Below are positions 5,121-47,903 of a stretch of DNA of 64,000 nt, piece by piece. A program made the translations under genes and the position numbers. Where the stretch lies: sequence record OR413581.1, one strand, 5' to 3'. The notes below the pieces were generated by a model that ran no database searches, was not told the DNA's origin, and saw only the letters and a list, made by a program, of their open reading frames with translations. Every line of letters begins with the position of its first letter. Positions within the stretch are counted from its first letter, which is position 1.

Positions 5121-7232
5121 ATGATACTGCGAAAAAACGATTGGCGACACTATCCGGGGGCGATTGTTGACGATGTCACACCAAACGTGCACTTCCTTCA
5201 ATTCGCCACAACACTACAAGGATTAGGTGTCCAGCATTGGTACGTCCACCTGGCATTACACAATCCCGAACTCCGTGGTGTTGATCCGTTTAGCCCGGAT
5301 TTAACACTCGAACAAAAAGCGATGATTGTTACGGAGTGTGCGGAAAACCCATGGTACTTCTTCCGTGAGTGTGTCCGGGTCCCTGCGGATGGTGTAAAGA
5401 ACGGGATGCCGTTTCGTCTAGACCGCGGTAACTTTTCGATGTATTGGATTTTCTTCAACAACATTGACGCCGCTATCGAGTTTCTCCGTCAGCATGGTAA
5501 GACTGTCGGGATGTCCGCATTGCTATTGTGGCTGATGCGCTTCCTGGAGAACTCACGTACGATTCTTATCACGAAGGGTCCTGCCCTGCGTGAAGAAACT
5601 ATCAACAAAATGAAACAACTGCGTAACGCGTTACCGGATTATCTCTGGCCTCATCACCCGGACGATCCTGATAACCGTGAGACATTTGCATGTCTAGCGC
5701 AGGGTAACAAACTTATCACCGGCATCGGTCAAAACGATAAGGAAGCTGCGAACGGGGTAGGCCGTGGACTCACAGCCGGACGCCTGTTCTCGGATGAAGG
5801 ACCGTTTACCAACAACATCCACCATATCCTCCCTGCTGCACTAGCATCGGGTACCGCGGCGCGTCGTATTAACGAAGCCGAAGGTGTTCCATACGGCAAC
5901 GTCTTCGCAACAACGCCTGGGGATTTGGCGACAGAAGAAGGCGAGTACATGTACAGCCTGATGACGTCGGGGATTTCGTGGGATGAACGGTATATCGACA
6001 TCCCGACTCGTGCACAACTGATTGACATGATTCGCAAAGGCTCTACTGCGAAGATTCCACGTATCATGTTCTACGTGAAATACAACCACCGCCAACTCGG
6101 TACCACGGACGAAGAACTCGCAGATATGATTGCGAACGCCCCAGGTACACCAGACCAAATCCGCCGTGACTTCGGTGGTGAATGGACAACCGGTGGTTAC
6201 AACAAACCGTTCTCAGGCGATGATGCAAGACGTATGAACGCCTCGCGTATTCGGGCAGCACAGAAAATTATCTCTGCTTCCAACTACGTAACGGATTGGT
6301 ATTACACTGAAGAGCAGATGTTGGTTAAAATGCAAGACCGCCACATCATCGGTTTGGATACTTCCGAAGCCGTGGGACGTGACGCCATTGCCATGTCAAT
6401 CGTCAACTCTGTCACTGCCGAATATGCCGGCAAGCTCACCGTGAACGAAACAAACGTCATCGGGTTTGCGATTCACTTAGCAGACTTCATGATCGAATAT
6501 CCGAACACGGTACTCATTCTGGAACGACGGTCTACCGGCTCCTCGGTAGCAGATGCCATTATACTGCAGCTGCAATCTAAGGTTCGCGATTTGCATCGTC
6601 GTTTGTACGTGAAAGTGACCCAGGATTACTCAAGGAACGATGAACTTTACAAAGAGTTCCATCGTGGCCCTGTGGGCAGTCCAGAGCGCTTCTGGGACAA
6701 ATTCCGTAAATACATCGGTTTCTCAACCGACCAGGATAAACGCCGTAAGTTGTATGGTGAAGTATTTACCACGGCGTTGCGTCTTTCTGCGGACTTACTG
6801 CGGTCAGGCGAATTGATCGACCAAATCCTCGGTCTCGTCGAACGAAACGGACGCATAGACCACCGTGCATCCGGTCACGATGACTTGGTGATATCCTGGC
6901 TTCTGGCAATGTGGTTACTTCTGTTCGGCAACAACTTAGGCCACTACGGTATAAGTAACAGCCGACTGATGATGCGCAACCGCAATATGCTCGGGGGCAT
7001 GGCAGGTGAATTCGATGAAGAGGCTGCAGTCGAGGAAGAAGAAAAGCAACAACAACTGATGGGGCAAATTGAAACGATGATTAGACAGAGTCAAGTTGTA
7101 GCCGACCCGGTACAACAGCTCATGTACAAGAATCGTATTCAAGCGCTCGTCTCTCAACTCAACACTGACGTTCGTAACGTCGCATCGATGGAAAGCTTGA
7201 AAGAGCTAATCCAACGACAGAGGATGAAGTGA
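5121..7232 (+). CDS. terL: Terminase large subunit
   Basis: Walker A RQHGKT, Walker B LFSDEG, RNase H-like nuclease motifs IIGLDTS and GHDDLV; 703 aa. Confidence 0.92.
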   Translation: MILRKNDWRHYPGAIVDDVTPNVHFLQFATTLQGLGVQHWYVHLALHNPELRGVDPFSPDLTLEQKAMIVTECAENPWYFFRECVRVPADGVKNGMPFRLDRGNFSMYWIFFNNIDAAIEFLRQHGKTVGMSALLLWLMRFLENSRTILITKGPALREETINKMKQLRNALPDYLWPHHPDDPDNRETFACLAQGNKLITGIGQNDKEAANGVGRGLTAGRLFSDEGPFTNNIHHILPAALASGTAARRINEAEGVPYGNVFATTPGDLATEEGEYMYSLMTSGISWDERYIDIPTRAQLIDMIRKGSTAKIPRIMFYVKYNHRQLGTTDEELADMIANAPGTPDQIRRDFGGEWTTGGYNKPFSGDDARRMNASRIRAAQKIISASNYVTDWYYTEEQMLVKMQDRHIIGLDTSEAVGRDAIAMSIVNSVTAEYAGKLTVNETNVIGFAIHLADFMIEYPNTVLILERRSTGSSVADAIILQLQSKVRDLHRRLYVKVTQDYSRNDELYKEFHRGPVGSPERFWDKFRKYIGFSTDQDKRRKLYGEVFTTALRLSADLLRSGELIDQILGLVERNGRIDHRASGHDDLVISWLLAMWLLLFGNNLGHYGISNSRLMMRNRNMLGGMAGEFDEEAAVEEEEKQQQLMGQIETMIRQSQVVADPVQQLMYKNRIQALVSQLNTDVRNVASMESLKELIQRQRMK

Positions 7233-8986: not shown

Positions 8987-10120
8987 ATGATGAACTATGA
9001 ACGTAAGCACGCGTGGCAAGAAAAGCTACGCACGGGGCAGATACATTCTGCCCAACAAGTGAAGATGTGGGTGCTGCCGCACGGCGTCATCTGCGAAATG
9101 GTCCAGGTCGGGGGATTACCTATTCTTCGAAATGGCAAATACGATTCGATGAACACGGTACTCGCGCGCTTGCTGGCCGATGCAGGCATAATGGGTACCG
9201 TGATTTTATATTCAACCGCAACGATTCCTCAGAACCTTTCTCGCTGGTTAACACATTGGCTTTCCAATGACCCTAGCGAGGATGATCCGTGGCTACGTTC
9301 GATGACAGTGACAACAATGGGTCAACGGCCGACGAAACCCCTCCCATTCCAGGTCAATGTAATTGAACCAGCTATTCTGGAAGCGGGTGAAGTGTTTGAA
9401 GCAATCAAACATCGATCTCGCGATGTTAGCATCAGTCAGTTTCTTATCGAAGCGAATGATGTGACTTACCGGCTGGAGCCTGTACGACGTATGGACGCTC
9501 GTATCGTCGACTGCACAGAGTTCGGTTATGTCTTGCGTACACAGGGCAACCATACCTTCCTGGCATCGATGCTCTCTCGCCGCGTGCAGGGACAGTTAGC
9601 ACACTACAAAGTGTCCCCTGCTGACCTCGTCGGTACCGACGTTAAGGTCGAATACACAATGTTTACCGAAGGGAATCGACTGTGTAATTTTAAGTCTCCG
9701 GTAGTCTATCGGAGTAAGGCACTTGATGCCTTAGGCGACCAGAATGTCCCGACATACGATGGCCCCTATCCGTTTAAATCGCAAGCATCTGCAAACCGTG
9801 CGCTCCTTACGGTAACTCGGTGTAAACGCGCAGCGATCACACGGACCGATGGGGAAATTTATGGTAAGGACACTGAGTCTGACGCAAAACTCTTTTCGTT
9901 CCGGCGGGGTGTGAAACCTGGATTGTATGCCGCGACGTTTGAAAAGGGGGATGACGTCGAGTTCTGGCAGTTCGACAGCGATTTTGCAGTAGATGCGATT
10001 GACCCAGATGCGTTAGTGAGTGTCATCACAGACCAAATCTTTTACGCGACGGGTATGAGTCTGCTGGAAATCTTTTTAATGTACGATGCCAGAGTACCTT
10101 CACAGTCAGTCAAAACGTAA
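8987..10120 (+). CDS. Hypothetical protein, possible degenerate ATP-dependent DNA ligase fold
   Basis: 377 aa. LRNGK, LEPVRRMDARIV and GTDVKVEY..T.G segments echo ligase motifs, but there is no KxDG lysine. Confidence 0.6.
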   Translation: MMNYERKHAWQEKLRTGQIHSAQQVKMWVLPHGVICEMVQVGGLPILRNGKYDSMNTVLARLLADAGIMGTVILYSTATIPQNLSRWLTHWLSNDPSEDDPWLRSMTVTTMGQRPTKPLPFQVNVIEPAILEAGEVFEAIKHRSRDVSISQFLIEANDVTYRLEPVRRMDARIVDCTEFGYVLRTQGNHTFLASMLSRRVQGQLAHYKVSPADLVGTDVKVEYTMFTEGNRLCNFKSPVVYRSKALDALGDQNVPTYDGPYPFKSQASANRALLTVTRCKRAAITRTDGEIYGKDTESDAKLFSFRRGVKPGLYAATFEKGDDVEFWQFDSDFAVDAIDPDALVSVITDQIFYATGMSLLEIFLMYDARVPSQSVKT

Positions 10121-10130
10121 GGAGCCTCCT

Positions 10131-10640
10131 ATGTTTACTGCGCCAACCGTGCAGGTGGGGCAAGGTCTTAACTTGGTGGTACACGACCAGCGGTTAATCG
10201 ACCTCTGCGACACAAGCATAATTACTGCGATGATGGACCATAACCCTTTAGGTGACTACGGAAATACCAGCGAGATTTTGGCTGTTGCTGCCGTCCTCCG
10301 TCGTATTTACGGTCAAATAACCATCGTAGATCTCTGTAACTTCATTGACAACCACAGAGATTTAACTAAAGGGTTGGTCGCACTTACTCAAGATGGGGTG
10401 TCAAGTTTTGACAGTTCTCTTGGTAATTTCCTAGACATCGGTTCCGGGTTCGACTCCGGGCTAATGTTCATCACTCGTGAACGCTACGTCGCCGTCTGGG
10501 AATTTCTGCAACGCATGGGTGTGCATGTTCCTGCAAAGATCATGCATTACCAAACTTACGACCTGAATATTTTCGGGGAGCCAGGGTTATGGATAAAACC
10601 AGTACACCTTGGCCTTGATGGCTACACCATCAAGTGTTAA
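10131..10640 (+). CDS. Hypothetical protein
   Basis: ATG at 10131 follows AAGGAG; ends at a strong terminator. Confidence 0.7.
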   Translation: MFTAPTVQVGQGLNLVVHDQRLIDLCDTSIITAMMDHNPLGDYGNTSEILAVAAVLRRIYGQITIVDLCNFIDNHRDLTKGLVALTQDGVSSFDSSLGNFLDIGSGFDSGLMFITRERYVAVWEFLQRMGVHVPAKIMHYQTYDLNIFGEPGLWIKPVHLGLDGYTIKC

Positions 10641-10647
10641 GTCACTA

Positions 10648-10697
10648 GGCGTACTCTCTTCGGGGAGTACGCCAATCTTATTTTTTTTTATTTTTTT
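10648..10697 (+). terminator. Rho-independent terminator
   Basis: GGCGTACTCTC-TTCG-GGGAGTACGCC plus a long T tract. Confidence 0.9.
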
Positions 10698-11262
10698 GGT
10701 TACTTTTTAACCAACCGGTTAAAGGGGTCTGGGAAGCATCAGAAAACGATTAGGTGGTATCGACGTAGGGTAGCTCGTTTTTGGCAGTTTATCGTTTTCT
10801 AGGGTCGGTTACGTGCGTTTTAGAGGGGGTTATGTATCGAGACAGAGAATTTATTTTTGTCGGGGCGAGGAAATTCAGGGAATGGGGATTCAGGATTGTA
10901 TGTTTTTTAACCAGTTATTAAAAACGCTCTAGAAAGCGCTAGAACGAGATTTAACTCAGACCCAGTACACTTGGGTTCCCCATACCGGAAAATCGCGCCA
11001 GCGGGCCGCTGAGAGCGCGAGAGTGCCATTCCCGTTTCGGTTCCGGGACGACGGTCGCGGCCGGCGACGACGATCACACGTTGGGTAGCACTTCGTGCCA
11101 TGTCTGGGTGAAAACTGGATCGTTCTGTAACCGACACACACTGTCGGTTACTTACGAGTTCTTTGGGTTGTTTAACTCGCTCTAAAATCCCCCTTAGGGG
11201 ATAATTTAATCTAATTCTCAAAATTTCTTTTTAAAACAATCACTTAGATTGTTTTTTAGATT

Positions 11263-11484
11263 GATCCTGTGGATCGGGTCGAAGACCCTTTCCTTATACG
11301 CGTGCGCGTGCGCACACCCGTATCCTCCAGGATCTTTTAAAATATATAATAATATTAAATATAATAATACCTTTAGGTATTATATTTAATTATTATAATT
11401 ATTTATATAAATAAATATATTAATATATTAAGATCTTAAAACGCGTGCAGGCGCGCGCGTGATCCTTATTAAGAGATCGTGATC
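11263..11484. other. Candidate replication origin / DNA-unwinding element
   Basis: 7 GATC in 222 bp, a 106-nt core (11335-11440) with only 6 G/C, several perfect palindromes and alternating purine-pyrimidine flanks. Confidence 0.5.
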
Positions 11485-11769
11485 GGACGGAAGTCCTAGT
11501 TTGGGTACCCTGTGTATTTTTTACGTGGTTTCCCTATCGTGTGTTCAGACCACCACTCGATGTCCAAAAACCCATAGCTTCGGTGGTCGCCTCCCTGGTC
11601 GGTAGACTCTGACAAGTCGACCCACAACACCAACCCGTCCGGGGACGGATTTTTATTCCAACGACAAGCTCCACGAAAATCCCCGCAGAGGGACTCACTG
11701 CTGTGTGACTCACCGGCTCCTGGACGCCTACGCCTCGAGCCGGTAATTTTTTGATTACGTGAGTTTGTT

Positions 11770-12360
11770 GTTATATGCGAATAGCGATTGACCGCGCCAA
11801 TGGTCCAATCACTTTTAAACCCTGCACGCTAGGGCTCCAAGTCCTGGGATTGTTACCCAGGACGCTTTTTCGAAAATACCTACCGTGGTGTCTTCGACAA
11901 AGCGCAATCTAACACTGCGTGATTTATTATGTTCTGGAAAACTTTCGCCGTGGAACAGAACCGGTGAGCGTCGGCGGGGATTCCGACAATCACCACCCAT
12001 TCAGGTACTCGGTAAATAACCGACCTGCCGACGTAGCACCGTCGGGCGTAGTTCGGTTTGCGAGAGTGTCGAGAAAGTCGACTGCGCACCCATGACAAAA
12101 TCCGAGTTGACCGTGGCAGCGCCAGAGGACTGGGCAGCGGAGAGACGTCGTTGAACTTACCTCCGATAGTTATCGCTGATTCCGCTCTGGCGTCGGGCCA
12201 AAACTGATTCGAATTCGGCGTTGCGTCGAAAAGGGGTCTGCGTGTAGAACCGCAGACTTGGGGGATAACTCCGATGAGGAGGTTGGTCCATATCTTGCCG
12301 GCTCGGAACAGACGAGAGGGGTGGGTACTCCCGTTGAGAAACGCCAGTACCTGGCTGATT
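11770..12360 (+). ncRNA. Candidate large structured non-coding RNA A
   Basis: No credible ORF; many stems plus a long-range 8-bp pair 12002-12009/12346-12353. Strand is inferred. Confidence 0.4.
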
Positions 12361-12369
12361 AAAATTTAC
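12361..12369 (+). promoter_or_regulatory. AAAATTTAC motif (middle-promoter-like)
   Basis: Copy of the motif at 8930 and 34758, upstream of ORF 12413. Confidence 0.5.
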
Positions 12370-12412
12370 AGATTCTGCGTGAGGTATGATAAACCAAACG
12401 GAGAATTAAATC

Positions 12413-12904
12413 ATGACCACGATAGCGTTCGATGGAAAAGTCTTAGCTGCTGACGGCCAGTTAACCCGTGGGTCGAATATCTGCAACCTGAATACCCAGA
12501 AGTTATTCATCTGCCCTTCTGACGAGGAGTGGTGGATTACTGGTGAACGGATTGTGGCGTTCGGAGTAAGCGGCGACATCACAGGACAATTGGCCCTGCT
12601 GGAAACGGTCCGCTTGAGACCCGGCTACAAGGGGTTAACACAAAGCTCGCAGTTACCTGCGAAGATGGATTTTACTTTCCTGATGCTTCTGGCCTCAGGG
12701 AAAGCGATAGTCGGTGGGAAGCGTGAAGACGACGTGTCGTTGTGGTGGAGTGAAGCCACACCACCTCTGGCAACCGGAAGCGGTTACGAGTATGCGTTGG
12801 GTGCGATGAAGATGGGCGCGAATGCGGTTCGTGCTGTTGAGATTGCGTCCGAATGCGATATCTACACCGGTGGTGAGATTAGCACTTACGAACTACGGAG
12901 GTGA
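12413..12904 (+). CDS. HslV/proteasome beta-subunit-like Ntn threonine peptidase
   Basis: N-terminus M-TTIAFDGKVLAADGQ, GSG motif and C-terminal DIYTGG; GGAG SD. Confidence 0.7.
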   Translation: MTTIAFDGKVLAADGQLTRGSNICNLNTQKLFICPSDEEWWITGERIVAFGVSGDITGQLALLETVRLRPGYKGLTQSSQLPAKMDFTFLMLLASGKAIVGGKREDDVSLWWSEATPPLATGSGYEYALGAMKMGANAVRAVEIASECDIYTGGEISTYELRR

Positions 12905-12997
12905 ATCATGCGGGAGTCAGAAGCACGCAAGCTTGACCCCATCAATCGCCTGCGATAACGGGGTAGCGCATCCGTATAAACACGTTTAAAGAATTCT

Positions 12998-14161: not shown

Positions 14162-14231
14162 GGCTTTGTAGCTCAGGTAGGTAGAGCAGCCTCTTTGAGG
14201 AAGGTCGCCGGTTCGAGACCGGTCAAAGCAA
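14162..14231 (+). tRNA. tRNA-like element with collapsed anticodon arm (pseudo-tRNA)
   Basis: Canonical D arm (GCTC..GAGC) and T arm (GCCGG-TTCGAGA-CCGGT) and a 6-bp acceptor; the anticodon arm is CCTC-TTT-GAGG, about 4 nt short; no CCA. Confidence 0.7.
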
Positions 14232-14310
14232 GAGCAGCGAAGTTAGAGGAATTAACACCCGACTCATAATCGGATATTTCGACGGTTCGAATCCGTCCGT
14301 TTGCTCGCCC
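14232..14310 (+). tRNA. Atypical tRNA with CAT anticodon (Met or Ile2)
   Basis: Anticodon arm CCCGA-CTCATAA-TCGGA, T arm GACGG-TTCGAAT-CCGTC; the acceptor stem pairs only with a bulge; no clean CCA. Confidence 0.7.
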
Positions 14311-28618: not shown

Positions 28619-29986
28619 GTGAGAAAGGTACCAAAATTCTACGGAATATCCGGCCGGTTGGTTAGTCAGGATAACTATTTGTCCGATTTGCAAATAGAAG
28701 CTGCTGCCAAAGGTATTAAACCACCCACTATTATTAACGATGTCGCCGTTAACGGGGATGCGATCGAGGTTGCTGAACTTATCGATCGCATGGTACAGAA
28801 CAGAATCGTTGACGAAGAACTGAACTCTGCACCGATTTGTAGTTTGGATTGTCCGGCACCGATCGCGCATCGTTACAATCTCGGTTGTAAGTGTCCGACG
28901 TGTGGCTATGTTGTAACTGAACATCGAATTGAATCCGATGTCTGGTTACGTGCACCTGATGAAATGGGTAACTTCGTCAACCCACGATTCTGGGCAATGT
29001 TCAATGCTTTCTTTAATAGCAAGTTGAAGAAGTTTGAACGTAACAAGGTCACTATCGAACGCGGTAATGACTTGATGATGTGGATGATTGACCCGTATTA
29101 CCGTATAGAAGAACCAGACGGTAAACGCGCACATGCTGTGAAACGTGTATTGGAAGAACATGGTTTCGTTCGTGGCTTGCGCAATCTGGTTGATAACCAC
29201 GTTAGTATCTTTAACATCCTTACCACGCCAGAAGCCTGGAAGGAAATCTTCGCACCTAATCGGCATAACGCCGCTGAAGGTGAACGCTTACGTTTACAAT
29301 GGAAGGAGCTATTCGAAACACAACGCCACGCATTCTTCCCAAGACACTTACCGTTAATCTCCTCTAAGCTTATTGTTACTGAGGAAGGTCGACGTGGTGT
29401 CATGGTAGACCCAGTGTTCACGGGTGCTATTGACGCGGTGAAAAATATCGCGTTGCTCTATACGCGGCGTAAAGCGATCGAACCACGTTTTCTGATTAGT
29501 CGCGCTTTGAAGGCGAACCGTCAGTTAACGTACTTCCACATGGACTTCCGTCGTGAGTCTATGGAAGGTAAACCGGGTGACTATCGTGCGAAATTGGGTT
29601 CTACCCATATCCCGTTCGGTGGTCGTGCAACCATCTCACCTATCTCAGAACCACACGATGCCTGGAAGTTAAAAGCACCATGGCGTTGGATGGTTGGGTT
29701 GATGTCGACCCACATCGAGAACAAACTGCTACGACGGGGTTATTCGTCACGGCAATGTGAGCGTATCGTTGCAAAAGCGGCAATGCAGTATGACCCGCTT
29801 GTAGATGAAATCTTTAAAGAACTGATTCGTGAATCCCCAGGCGGTCTTGGGATCATGGTCATACCGTTACGTAACCCAACGCTGGTACAGTTGTCTATTC
29901 AAACGCTGTACATCGATGAAGTTGTTACCGATGTTAACCAGTGTTCGCTGCGTATCTCTGACCGTGTGATCAAGATGGCTAACGGT
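28619..29986 (+). CDS. rpoC: Non-virion RNA polymerase beta-prime N-terminal subunit, exon 1
   Basis: Zn-finger CSLDC...CKCPTCG, GKPGDYR, RNPTL motif; ends ...KMANG at the group I 5' splice site. Confidence 0.85.
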
Positions 29987-30342
29987 TCGAAAAGAGCCCC
30001 ATCGGACGGGAAACCTCTGATGCGTATTCTCCTGAAATGCTGGGAAACCCTAAAGCGTATCTACCAGAAATGGGGACGAAAGTCTGAAACAACAGATACG
30101 ATGACCTACGCTAAACAATACTGCTAAGGGTTGTGTTAATGGGTAATCAGCAGCGAAGCCTCGTGAGAGGAACGTTCAACGACTATCGCTGAAATGCGAG
30201 TAGGGGTCCCAGTGGACTTCGAAGTGGGAGAACACCTAAGGCGAAAGCTATGGTGAAGATATAGTCTGTGCCTTATCGAGAGATAAGGAGGGTGTCTTAG
30301 CACACCTGCTGTATACGGAAACGGTATACAGTGGACAAACAG
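29987..30342 (+). mobile_element. Group I self-splicing intron without ORF (356 nt)
   Basis: P AAATGCTGGGAAA 30035-47, Q AATCAGCAGC 30145-54, R GTTCAACGACTAT 30174-86, S AAGATATAGTC 30256-66; P1 GGU|UC-GAAAA-GAGCC with the U.G wobble; terminal G at 30342; splicing restores the frame. Confidence 0.92.
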
Positions 30343-30570
30343 GATTTTGATGGTGACCAGTTCCAGGTACGTTTGCCAGTCGATGAAACTGAGATGAAGT
30401 TGGCGCTCCAATTCCGTCCAGATAACGGCTTTATGTCTTCTACTGATGTGGACCGCGTAGAACACGGCATGGTTTTACATAACGAGCTAATCAGTATGCA
30501 GAACCAGTTCCTTATTGAAGCAGATGAGGATGATGAAGAAGGCATTCCGTTGGAAGCGGTGATGGGCTAA
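30343..30570 (+). CDS. rpoC: Non-virion RNA polymerase beta-prime N-terminal subunit, exon 2 (catalytic DFDGD)
   Basis: Begins GAT TTT GAT GGT GAC; the spliced product is 531 aa with NGDFDGD. Confidence 0.88.
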   Translation, partial: DFDGDQFQVRLPVDETEMKLALQFRPDNGFMSSTDVDRVEHGMVLHNELISMQNQFLIEADEDDEEGIPLEAVMG

Positions 30571-45158: not shown

Positions 45159-47903
45159 ATGGTAGAAATTCAAATGACTTACACGAGTATGGGGGTACGG
45201 GTTGAAGTCCCCATCCGCCAGGCTGAAAGGGCCATACTCGCGTGGGCCGAAGAGAATATGCACGCCCCAAAGATGGGCAAGCAACATGGACGAATAACCA
45301 CGGAACGCGGCGATGCGTACTACGCCCACATTCCGTCTTTAAGGACATTCATTTTCCATAAAGTGTTCGCTGAGAAGATTAAACATATCCTCCAACGGGC
45401 AGCAATTGAATACGCTTTTCAGTACAAGCTTACAGAGCACCATCCTGAACGTGCAGAACCTTATAAGTGCACGTTTGATAATTACGGATTCAAGATGGAA
45501 GAGACAGACCCAGAGTCGCGTTTCTATTATCAGAATGAAGTCGTAGCCGCCGCAACAGATCCATCGCGCTCACAAACGGTTTTCGCGATACAAACAGGAA
45601 GAGGAAAAGCTCTCGCGCATGGTACGCGTGTGCGTGTACCGGGTGGTTGGAAGAACATTGAGGATATACAGCTAGGTGATTACGTTACGGGGCGTGACGG
45701 AAAACCAGCAATGGTCTCTGGAGTGTTCCCACAGGGTGTGGTTGACCTGTATCAGGTGACGTTTTGGGATGGTAGGAGTGTTGACGTATGTGGCGAGCAC
45801 TTGTGGCAAAGCTACTACGTTAATACCACCGAGAATCGTCGCTGGGGTGTACGTGATACCCTAGAGATGAAACGTTTAATTTCGATGCCTAATCCACGGG
45901 TATACATCCCATTACCAGAACCAGAGGAAATGCCAGCTAAGGATTTTGTCATTCATCCGTATTTACTCGGTATCCTCTTGGGTGATGGCTCCCTATCGAT
46001 GCCTGGCGTTTTATACACCAAAGGCGATGTGGAGATTCGTGACCGTGTTGCTGAGGTCATGCCCGCTGGACATGCAATCCATGATTCATCGTACAGCGAT
46101 GGGATAACGAAGTGCATCTCTTGTCCCGGCGGTGTTAACCTTGTCCGCAGAGAGCTTGAGCGGTTAGGGTTAATTGGCTGCAGGTCTTGGGAAAAGTTCA
46201 TACCTGGAGATTACTTCGAAACGTCCATCGAACAACGGTGGGAGTTGTTGCGTGGCTTGATGGATACTGACGGTACTGTGGATAAGGATGGTGGTACGCC
46301 TTCTTTCTGTTCCACCAGTAAAGAATTGGCTTTAGGTGTTCAGGAACTTGTGCGGTCTTTAGGAGGGATTGCAACACTACGCGAGAAACGTCCGTTCTTC
46401 ACACACAACGGCGAACGTCGTGAAGGTCGTTTGGCTTATAACGTCTCCATCCGCCACAAAACACCATCGAAACTGTTCCATCTTCCAAGGAAGAAAGAAC
46501 TGTGTCGTGATAACGGACAATACACCGATATACTGAAACTCCGTGTTAAGTCTATCGAACCCATTGGTCGTGATCTTGCCACGTGTATTCGTGTCGAGAA
46601 CGACGATGCGTTGTTTGTGGTGGACAAGTGGATCGTTACGCACAACACCAAGACCTGTATGAAGTCGATGGTTAAACGGGGAACCCGTACCGCATTGATT
46701 CACCGTCCGTCATACGTTCCCAAATGGCTGTTTGACGTCTGTGATGATGAAACAGGACTTCGTATACTTCGTGACGAGGTGTTAGTTTGTACAGGCGTAC
46801 AGGCGATTTACGACGCGTTGGAGATGGGTAAGTCGGGAGAGCTAGATAGACGCGGTATTAAGGTAATAATCCTCCCCACGGTCTCTCTACAGCGTTTCCT
46901 GAAGGAGTACATTAACACTGCTGCGACTAACCCTGTGGACCTGGATACGTTTTATGATGTTCTGGGTGTGGGTCTGGTGGCGATGGATGAGGTGCACGAG
47001 CATTTTCACCTCGTTTACATGGCTGGTATAATGTTGAACCCGCCGGCATCGATAGAGATGTCTGCAACTCTTAAACCGGGTAGCAGTAAAGCCTTTATCG
47101 CGGAGCGGTATTTAGAACGTTTCCCAATGGAGTACCGAATCAGTATTCCAATCATTCCGGTGGTTGACGTGAAAGCGTTGTACTATCGACTGGATGATAA
47201 GAAGTTCGCGTGGTGGGCGTCGAAGATGACGCCGTATAACCACAAACTCTTCGAAGGGAAGCTGATTAAAGAGAACTTGCATTTAGAATACGCGAACATG
47301 ATCTGGGATGTGGTTGAGAAATCGTTCCTTAAACGGTATCAACCCGGCCAGAAGTGTTTGCTGCTATTTGCCACGGTTGCAATGTGTGAGTTCTTTACCG
47401 AGTATGTGAAAGATAAGTTATCGCGTGACCCTGTATTCCATCCACTGATGGTGGCGAAATATAATGCAGGCGATTCGTATGACGACTTTATCCAAGCAGA
47501 CTTCTCTATCTCCACACCGGGGAAAGCGGGGACTGCGGTCGATAAACCTGGGTTGGTGCACATGTACATTTCAACCCCGGTAGAAGACCAGCAACTGAAC
47601 GAACAGATGGCCGGTCGTCCACGTAAGATTCTCCACAACGAATGGGGTGAAATAGACCCAACGGTGTGGTTATTCCATGCGTATAACGTACCGAAGCATT
47701 GCAATTACCTGAATGCCCGCCAGAAATCACTCAAGGATGTCGTATTGTCGTTCCGTATCGCGACATCCCCCTACGTTGTAAGGAAATCACATGCTCACTC
47801 CGCCGCGTCCAGCAGAGCCGCTGCCACCCTACATCGGAATGACTTTAGCAAGTTTTCTCGAAAACATTCTAAAGGCGTATCCCGGCGTAGAAGACGTCGC
47901 TAA
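45159..47903 (+). CDS. Superfamily 2 helicase containing an intein
   Basis: Walker A QTGRGK|T split by the intein, DEVH Walker B, SAT motif III, QMAGRPR motif VI. Confidence 0.88.
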   Translation: MVEIQMTYTSMGVRVEVPIRQAERAILAWAEENMHAPKMGKQHGRITTERGDAYYAHIPSLRTFIFHKVFAEKIKHILQRAAIEYAFQYKLTEHHPERAEPYKCTFDNYGFKMEETDPESRFYYQNEVVAAATDPSRSQTVFAIQTGRGKALAHGTRVRVPGGWKNIEDIQLGDYVTGRDGKPAMVSGVFPQGVVDLYQVTFWDGRSVDVCGEHLWQSYYVNTTENRRWGVRDTLEMKRLISMPNPRVYIPLPEPEEMPAKDFVIHPYLLGILLGDGSLSMPGVLYTKGDVEIRDRVAEVMPAGHAIHDSSYSDGITKCISCPGGVNLVRRELERLGLIGCRSWEKFIPGDYFETSIEQRWELLRGLMDTDGTVDKDGGTPSFCSTSKELALGVQELVRSLGGIATLREKRPFFTHNGERREGRLAYNVSIRHKTPSKLFHLPRKKELCRDNGQYTDILKLRVKSIEPIGRDLATCIRVENDDALFVVDKWIVTHNTKTCMKSMVKRGTRTALIHRPSYVPKWLFDVCDDETGLRILRDEVLVCTGVQAIYDALEMGKSGELDRRGIKVIILPTVSLQRFLKEYINTAATNPVDLDTFYDVLGVGLVAMDEVHEHFHLVYMAGIMLNPPASIEMSATLKPGSSKAFIAERYLERFPMEYRISIPIIPVVDVKALYYRLDDKKFAWWASKMTPYNHKLFEGKLIKENLHLEYANMIWDVVEKSFLKRYQPGQKCLLLFATVAMCEFFTEYVKDKLSRDPVFHPLMVAKYNAGDSYDDFIQADFSISTPGKAGTAVDKPGLVHMYISTPVEDQQLNEQMAGRPRKILHNEWGEIDPTVWLFHAYNVPKHCNYLNARQKSLKDVVLSFRIATSPYVVRKSHAHSAASSRAAATLHRNDFSKFSRKHSKGVSRRRRRR
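45609..46646 (+). mobile_element. Class 3 intein with LAGLIDADG homing endonuclease (346 aa)
   Basis: Starts ALAHGTRV (Ala1); block B CGEHLW, block F ATCIRV, block G WIVTHN followed by +1 Thr; endonuclease motifs LLGILLGDGS and LRGLMDTDG. Confidence 0.92.

Follow-up and report, generated by a model that had tools for sequence, protein, structure and literature searches.

A conserved GATC-flanked, AT-rich element of SPN3US-like jumbo phages is a candidate replication origin

Introduction

A 222-bp stretch of non-coding DNA in Salmonella phage SPLA3, in which seven GATC sites surround a core of almost pure A+T, raises the question of whether replication of this phage begins there. SPLA3 (OR413581.1, 240,593 bp, genus Seoulvirus) is an SPN3US-like jumbo phage and near kin of SPN3US, one of the phiKZ-related giant phages (PMC5312081, PMC5694885). 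Phages of the SPN3US type carry T4-like replication and recombination genes (PMC5694885), so that a fixed origin might be dispensable for most of their replication, and a recent genome paper describes origin prediction in giant phages as unreliable (PMC12390700). The original prediction, made from the letters alone, proposed a host-oriC-like and possibly Dam-sensitive origin and knew of no well-mapped origin for nucleus-forming phages. Our literature searches agree with this statement: full-text searches yielded no mapped origin for phiKZ-like or SPN3US-like phages, and the searchable literature yielded no description of this element. The analysis started from bases 1-64000 of the SPLA3 genome (the window); the remaining genome was retrieved, and genome-wide scans cover all 240,593 bp.

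Results

A single GATC cluster surrounds the least stable DNA of the genome

The seven GATC sites (11263, 11272, 11331, 11432, 11461, 11475 and 11481) are all located where they had been placed, the core (11335-11440) contains 6 G/C in 106 nt (94% A+T), and all palindromes and motifs quoted in the original prediction were found at their positions. The prediction had been staked on a GATC density above the background, and seven sites are seen where 0.47 are expected in 222 bp. This low expectation results from a depletion of the site, since the window contains only 136 GATC, one per 470 bp, compared to 251 ± 15 in shuffled sequences. GATC is thus about twofold under-represented in the window despite a phage-encoded Dam-type methylase, which suggests selection against GATC outside the element.

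Seven or more GATC per 222 bp were obtained in 0.1% of uniform placements in the 64-kb window and in 0.28% of random placements across the whole genome (p about 0.003). The element is the sole cluster of at least five GATC in the genome, the runner-up 222-bp window containing four. The AT core has 5% GC, whereas the runner-up among the lowest 100-bp windows of the genome has 26%. With a nearest-neighbour duplex stability of -87.9 kcal/mol it is also the least stable 100 bp of the genome (mean -140.1, sd 6.1; runner-up -111.9 kcal/mol). Folding of 11255-11500 as single-stranded DNA gave -44.9 kcal/mol, compared to -22.9 ± 3.2 kcal/mol for dinucleotide shuffles (z = -6.9), and none of the 200 shuffles folded as well. 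The element is present in a single copy, both of its boundary boxes are found nowhere else in the genome, and scans for GATC, stability and alternating tracts detected nothing comparable in any other intergenic region of the 240 kb. Taken together, these results confirmed the initial observation and showed that it is not a chance effect.

The element lies in a gene-free gap next to a gene with a ligase fold

The element is located within a 1.77-kb gap (10641-12412) without annotated genes or long open reading frames. The genes around it are:

5121-7232: large terminase gene (SPN3US gp260), 3.9 kb upstream of the element
8987-10120, + strand: 377 aa, gp262, left neighbour
10131-10640, + strand: 169 aa, gp263, left neighbour
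12413-12904: HslV-family peptidase gene, right neighbour

Gene direction is identical left and right of the element, which is therefore not a point of transcription divergence. The gene at 8987-10120 is annotated as hypothetical protein, and we take it by our own count to be SPN3US gp262. Its structural model, a confident one (pLDDT 84.9), matches ATP-dependent DNA ligases (probability 1.0, TM 0.3-0.4), namely those of Chlorella virus, T7, T4 and ASFV, and the protein is already listed as putative ligase in one GenBank record. A KxDG motif was not evident in gp262, and the modelled ligase may be divergent or inactive. The ligase fold places the element in a context of DNA metabolism and rules out gp262 as an initiator or small terminase. 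Only 13 close homologues were found for gp263, its model is poor (pLDDT 53), and the gene is missing next to the element in the E. coli 'plasmid' lineage described below. Neither of the two proteins looks like an initiator or a small terminase, and a recognisable initiator gene adjoining the element was not found.

A second coding sequence (45159-47903) is also annotated as terminase large subunit; this annotation looks doubtful, and the literature identifies 5121-7232 (gp260) as the terminase. Several close relatives carry an extra 576-bp open reading frame immediately upstream of the HslV gene (12415-12990 in SPLA5c). SPLA3 lacks this frame, which may be a mobile gene. Two open reading frames, both annotated as RNA polymerase beta subunit (28790-30127 and 30394-30570), are separated by a group I intron (29967-30288; Rfam RF00028, 68.9 bits) and are therefore probably one intron-split gene and not two. 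Matches to the tRNA model above the Rfam gathering score at 14162-14231 (37.1 bits) and 14234-14305 (30.6 bits) are neither ARAGORN calls nor annotated in the record and may represent degenerate or unusual tRNAs.

Parts of the element

Reading from left to right, the element and its immediate surroundings consist of the following parts (strand given where it applies):

11233-11255, + strand: upstream AT-rich palindrome with a 9-bp stem, containing a conserved TTTTTAAAAca..ACTTA motif
11263-11275: left GATC pair GATCCTGTGGATC
11276-11288: small GC hairpin GGGTC-GAA-GACCC
11295-11317: left GC block, 23 nt of perfectly alternating purines and pyrimidines with the internal palindrome GTGCGCGTGCGCAC
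11323-11338: left boundary box TCCTCCAGGATCTTTT, of which GGATCTTTT is invariant in a 10-lineage alignment
11335-11440: AT core, putative DNA unwinding element
11364-11383: core hairpin 1, GC-tipped, ATAATACC-TTTA-GGTATTAT
11400-11439: core palindromes ATTTATATAAAT, AATATATTAATATATT and TTAAGATCTTAA, the last containing a GATC
11441-11460: right GC block, a hairpin with 8 pairs starting with ACGCGTGC
11456-11484: right boundary box with three GATC, of which CGTGATCyTTATTA is invariant in the alignment
11485-11496: small GC hairpin GGAC-GGAA-GTCC
11517-11550, + strand: promoter-like motif TTTTTTACg...TATCGTGTG, directed rightward, away from the core

The sequence TTTTTAAAAC of the upstream palindrome has only three copies in the genome. 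GATCCTG of the left GATC pair and CAGGATC at 11328-11334, in the left boundary box, are 7-bp inverted repeats of each other. The tract of the left GC block is the longest alternating purine-pyrimidine tract in the 240.6-kb genome and is likely prone to forming Z-DNA; ACGCGTGC, at the start of the right GC block, is a direct repeat of 11298-11305 in the left one. The sole direct repeat pair flanking the core is 23 nt long and 74% identical, and a clear iteron array, which in lambda ori or P1 oriR would comprise at least three direct repeats beside the initiator gene, is not present. GATCGG occurs twice in the element and 76 times in the genome. Of the 13 genomic copies of TTTTTTAC, the sequence of the motif at 11517, 11 are on the + strand and most are intergenic; a promoter function is predicted for this motif.

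The architecture is conserved in jumbo phages related to SPN3US

Conservation was investigated with BLAST and pattern scans of phage records, IMG/VR, metagenomes and bacterial assemblies. The architecture was found in synteny in at least six lineages: Seoulvirus, Erskinevirus, Machinavirus, Wellingtonvirus, an E. coli 'plasmid' lineage and metagenomic contigs. Carriers are Seoulvirus isolates, SPAsTU, pEa_SNUABM_29, phiEaH2 and Asesino (Erskinevirus), Wellingtonvirus, Huxley (Machinavirus) and several IMG/VR and metagenome contigs of 222-248 kb, and every genuine copy is flanked by homologues of gp262 and HslV. A phage contig binned with a Shewanella metagenome-assembled genome also carries the element, and its homologue of the 377-aa protein is only 48% identical.

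One record, NZ_CP173450.1, is listed as a circular 'plasmid' (221,873 bp) from a urinary isolate of E. coli. It is a jumbo phage of this clade; its region 148610-156744 contains the syntenic terminase-region genes, the element and an HslV gene, and closely similar contigs of 222-228 kb recur in metagenomes. BLAST against 5,426 E. coli genomes gave no chromosomal match and this 222-kb 'plasmid' as the single match. A distribution of the element on satellites or plasmids was considered, and the genome and metagenome scans gave mostly chance matches. Since genuine copies are present only in jumbo-phage contigs of about 222-228 kb or fragments of such phages, with the same synteny, this reading was dropped.

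In the 10-lineage alignment, invariant columns are concentrated in GGATCTTTT and CGTGATCyTTATTA, and these boundary boxes are invariant although the neighbouring gp262 is only 47-60% identical across lineages. Other positions retained are those of the GATC sites. A GATC pair or triplet is present at the position of the left pair in SPAsTU, pEa_SNUABM_29, phiEaH2, Asesino and Wellington, and GATC at +3 and +17 from the right-box anchor is kept in nearly all lineages. The TTTTTAAAAca..ACTTA motif is aligned across all lineages, and the TTTTTTAC promoter-like motif is kept right of the element in all of them.

The segments between these sites are conserved in another way. In the core the composition is kept, while the sequence is free and the length varies between about 60 bp in Wellington and about 245 bp in the E. 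coli 'plasmid' lineage. In the left GC block, alternation and palindromy are kept but not the sequence; alternating tracts of 15-28 nt with differing sequences occupy this position in all 12 elements examined. Seven or eight palindromes retain position and symmetry and differ in sequence, and the hairpin stems differ at matching positions, e.g., ACC/GGT, TCCC/GGGA and ATC/GAT. Core hairpin 1 is represented elsewhere by TATATCCC-GTA-GGGATATA or TAATATC-TTTA-GATATTA, and the alignment column pairs 204/222 and 208/218 are altered on both sides. A second hairpin at the position of the core palindromes is, e.g., AAACCC-TAC-GGGTTT or ATACTACTACGTAGTAGTAT in other lineages. Most other lineages have a GC-rich hairpin of another sequence at the relative position of 11276-11288, and GC hairpins of differing sequence, corresponding to that at 11485-11496, are present at +30 to +43. 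Sites fixed in sequence next to segments constrained only in composition or symmetry indicate a cis-acting DNA element and not a gene or a neutral spacer; the invariant boxes on both sides of a core conserved in composition only fit an unwinding element between protein sites. These data support that the element is real, unique, conserved and non-coding.

At the same syntenic position the more distant sister genus Derbicusvirus (CR5, Phobos, EarlPhillipIV) has a different non-coding element. It is moderately AT-rich and rich in palindromes, and it contains AAGGGGGGAT as a direct repeat on both sides of its single GATC, repeats of ATGGATAA and GAATGAATG, and nested inverted repeats within a segment of about 20% GC.

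The phage encodes a Dam-type methylase

A gene for a D12-class N6-adenine methyltransferase is located at 109214-110008 of the genome (E = 8.6e-53), outside the 64-kb window. The best relatives with a solved structure are E. coli Dam (2g1p, E = 1.6e-55), DpnII M1 and T4 Dam, all of them GATC enzymes, and the phage methylase is therefore predicted to be specific for GATC. The gene is also present in pEa_SNUABM_29, Kwan, ChrisDB and Machina, which belong to the clade bearing the element, and the SPLA3 protein is 33.6% identical to the P1 enzyme (tblastn). With a methylase of its own, the phage could plausibly control a methylation switch at the element. The possible Dam sensitivity put forward in the original prediction appears plausible, given this gene.

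Comparison with oriC and other origins

E. coli oriC (reference MG1655 3925744-3925975) resembles the element in having dense Dam sites around an AT-rich unwinding region. In contrast to oriC, the core of the element has a greater length, a far higher A+T content and many palindromes, it is flanked by GC-rich alternating purine-pyrimidine blocks, and the methylase is phage-encoded. The specific features of a host-type oriC that had been proposed were not borne out, since no lineage contains DnaA boxes. The string TGTGGATCG, presented as a 7/9 match to a DnaA box, is indeed present, but it has two mismatches, is lineage-specific and is absent from the other lineages. Searches for the DnaA box TTWTNCACA with at most one mismatch gave no hit in the element of 11 lineage representatives, barring the unrelated TTTTTTACA promoter-like motif. 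The likeness to the E. coli 13-mers is weak: GATCTTTTAAAAT is, by our own reading of the sequence, a poor fit to the consensus, and the element contains no tandem array of 13-mer repeats (GATCTnTTnTTTT). Aligned to the 13-mer region of oriC, the right box gave GTGATC-CTTATTAAGAGATCG with identity in 19 of 22 columns and three gaps, a modestly unusual score reached by 3 of 500 shuffles, which however destroy GATC; the alignment of the left arm is not significant (151 of 500 shuffles). Lacking DnaA boxes, the element does not belong to the oriC family, and an origin dependent on host DnaA was ruled out.

P1 oriR and other Dam-requiring origins have GATC-containing repeats in their AT-rich part and fire depending on the methylation state. 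Origins of the P1 oriR type also contain an iteron array for the Rep protein and DnaA boxes, neither of which is evident in the element. In T4 oriF and oriG and in the primary origin of T7, a promoter is followed by an unwinding element and replication is primed by the transcript; to our knowledge, these origins are not noted for GATC clusters or dense palindromes. The element shares with them the AT-rich unwinding element and a nearby promoter-like motif, but the sole promoter-like site found faces away from the core. The phage also has a T4-like polymerase and UvsX (PMC5694885).

Promoters and RNAs in the gap

For the virion RNA polymerases of phiKZ-type phages an AT-rich promoter is expected (PMC5312081). 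The genome has 22 sites of the sharply defined promoter-like motif nAAaanaTtTcAGATAGATATTATCTangtGA. Each scores at least 29 bits, is intergenic and is located on the + strand, and the motif probably represents the AT-rich promoter class of virion RNA polymerases in phiKZ relatives. Eight of the sites are located in the window and 14 elsewhere in the genome:

8940, 15657, 18620, 26530, 26623, 35567, 36983 and 40726, + strand: nAAaanaTtTcAGATAGATATTATCTangtGA sites in the window

The best score of the 22-site PWM anywhere in 10641-12412 is 3.8 bits. A function of the AT core as an array of this AT-rich promoter was ruled out, its 3.8 bits being like those of shuffled cores, and with the same profile no promoter firing into the core was found.

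Searches at gathering or E <= 1 thresholds detected no Rfam family in the gap. The sequence at 11517-11656 is a candidate for a small RNA unit. It comprises the TTTTTTAC motif, two conserved hairpins and the terminator CCGTCCGGGGACGG with a T run, and the candidate RNA would be about 115 nt long with its own terminator. The unit is kept in SaP7, SPAsTU and pEa_SNUABM_29, with three pairs changed on both sides. The region 10500-12600 contains 10 terminator-like hairpins, compared to 2.3 ± 1.8 in shuffles. The sequence TTCTTTTTT had been considered as an element-specific motif and was rejected, as it corresponds to the T tract of terminators.

GC skew and record starts do not locate the origin or the genome ends

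Cumulative GC skew tracks gene orientation and has no turning point at the element; since it follows the coding strand, it is uninformative about the origin. Many records of relatives begin in or near the core with breakpoints on palindromes, at which assemblers presumably tend to break, and the starts of the Erwinia phage records were set by alignment. In the SPFM8 record (LR535906.1, 1-2600) the first kilobases consist of 60-nt blocks in reversed order, each block itself being unreversed. This looks like a file-handling error, which probably also affects those SPFM records whose BLAST alignments fall into 19-28 pieces. Since record starts derive from assembly, a corrupted record or an alignment convention, they do not represent physical ends, and the starts of GenBank records were discarded as evidence on the ends of the genome.

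Discussion

A unique and extreme unwinding region that is combined with GC clamps, invariant flanking boxes, Dam sites and conserved single-strand hairpins is what an origin classically consists of, and the element is the best origin candidate found to date for this phage group. By analogy, its design would work like that of oriC or P1 oriR, as an AT-rich opening site marked by methylation. Our preferred reading is a phage-specific, supercoiling-responsive and Dam-modulated replication origin that is oriC-like in design without belonging to the oriC family; we put its chance at slightly less than even.

According to this reading, the element would act in cis as an origin of replication in SPN3US-like jumbo phages, probably as their primary one, and would be operated by phage factors and not by host DnaA. 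The duplex would open at the 106-bp core, where negative supercoiling would drive melting and the extrusion of hairpins. Transcription generates negative supercoils behind it (twin-domain model), and Z-DNA-prone tracts, cruciforms and AT tracts can absorb them. The motif at 11517 would fire away from the core, so that transcription leaving this promoter-like site would send negative supercoils into the core and possibly boost its opening. The flanking GC-rich palindromic blocks would confine the bubble, and the left block could flip to Z-DNA. GGATCTTTT, CGTGATCyTTATTA and the flanking GATC groups would be binding sites for a putative phage protein, which might load the DnaB-like helicase of the phage. 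The methylation state of the GATC sites, set by the phage Dam, could time or limit firing. The analysis shows that the element is unique, extremely unstable, able to form structures, conserved in a characteristic pattern and syntenic, that the Dam gene is present and that DnaA boxes are absent; we infer every one of these functional steps. The more far-reaching proposal that this is the first identifiable origin of one clade among the phiKZ-related jumbo phages, acting as a DnaA-independent, Dam-licensed and supercoil-driven switch composed of a Z-DNA tract, an unwinding element and hairpins, is tentative and on the doubtful side.

Other functions have to be weighed against a role in replication. 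The element could be a structural or transcriptional boundary, either an insulator that absorbs supercoils or a docking site for a nucleoid-type protein. In this role it would separate the block of terminase and ligase-fold genes from that of the small RNA, HslV and tRNAs, and might tune the site at 11517. The density of terminator-like hairpins in the gap, the conserved promoter-like motif with the candidate RNA of about 115 nt directly downstream and the capacity of the Z-DNA-prone tract, cruciforms and AT tract for negative supercoils are consistent with such a boundary. However, an insulator leaves the invariant GATC boxes and the co-conserved Dam unexplained, no comparable intergenic region is found elsewhere in the 240 kb, and the core does not match the phage promoter profile; we consider a boundary unlikely. 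In a variant of the origin idea with a different chemistry, extruded hairpins or cruciforms would be cut by SbcCD-like or RuvC-like nucleases, and the resulting end would start UvsX-dependent replication. Among the annotated products of the record are SbcC-like and SbcD-like subunits, a RuvC-like resolvase and also a UvsX-like recombinase, and the hairpin potential of the element is exceptional. This case is purely circumstantial and does not account for the conservation of GATC and the invariant boxes; we regard such a programmed break as improbable.

As the main rival of an origin, the element could be a pac site of the P1 kind, which suits the GATC pattern about equally well. The terminase would then recognise the two GATC groups joined by the bendable AT core, cutting would need full Dam methylation by the phage enzyme, and only some copies in the concatemer would start a headful series. 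A composition-constrained core of free length is unusual for a cleavage site. The pac site of P1 has 161 bp with seven TGATCA/G hexamers, and packaging of P1 needs Dam methylation (PMC10028697, PMC12707154). The element likewise has seven GATC in 222 bp, grouped three and four around a central region, both phages have a Dam homologue, the large terminase gene gp260 is located 3.9 kb upstream and the element is single-copy. Only one of its seven sites fits TGATC[AG], the seven being TGATCC, GGATCG, GGATCT, AGATCT, TGATCC, AGATCG and TGATCG. In contrast to the P1 site, the centre is an extreme AT tract with hairpins, and defined genome ends are not known. The element is outside any terminase gene, in a gene-free gap next to gp262 with its ligase fold, and no small terminase is known nearby. 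The literature regards headful packaging of the T4 type as the mode of SPN3US and phiKZ, and circular permutation is described for the SPFM genomes (PMC5694885, PMC6614189). We consider a pac site quite unlikely. The element could also have no function at all, as a low-complexity expansion, a remnant left by a mobile element or an artefact of assembly. Several assemblies break inside the AT core, which indicates that the region is hard to sequence, but independent assemblies of dozens of isolates and metagenomes contain the same architecture. The boundary boxes are invariant across genera, and this conservation argues so strongly against a mere oddity that we regard it as very improbable.

If the element were a pac site, the assumption of T4-like packaging in these phages would be overturned. 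The preferred reading, a phage-specific origin, leads elsewhere. SPN3US is a genetic model with amber mutants, and a single, sharply bounded and conserved candidate of 220 bp makes the start of replication in these phages directly testable. If it is the origin, it would provide a cis-element for replicons that amplify in infected cells and a handle on the initiator protein, and it would explain why this clade has a Dam gene in a genome depleted of GATC.
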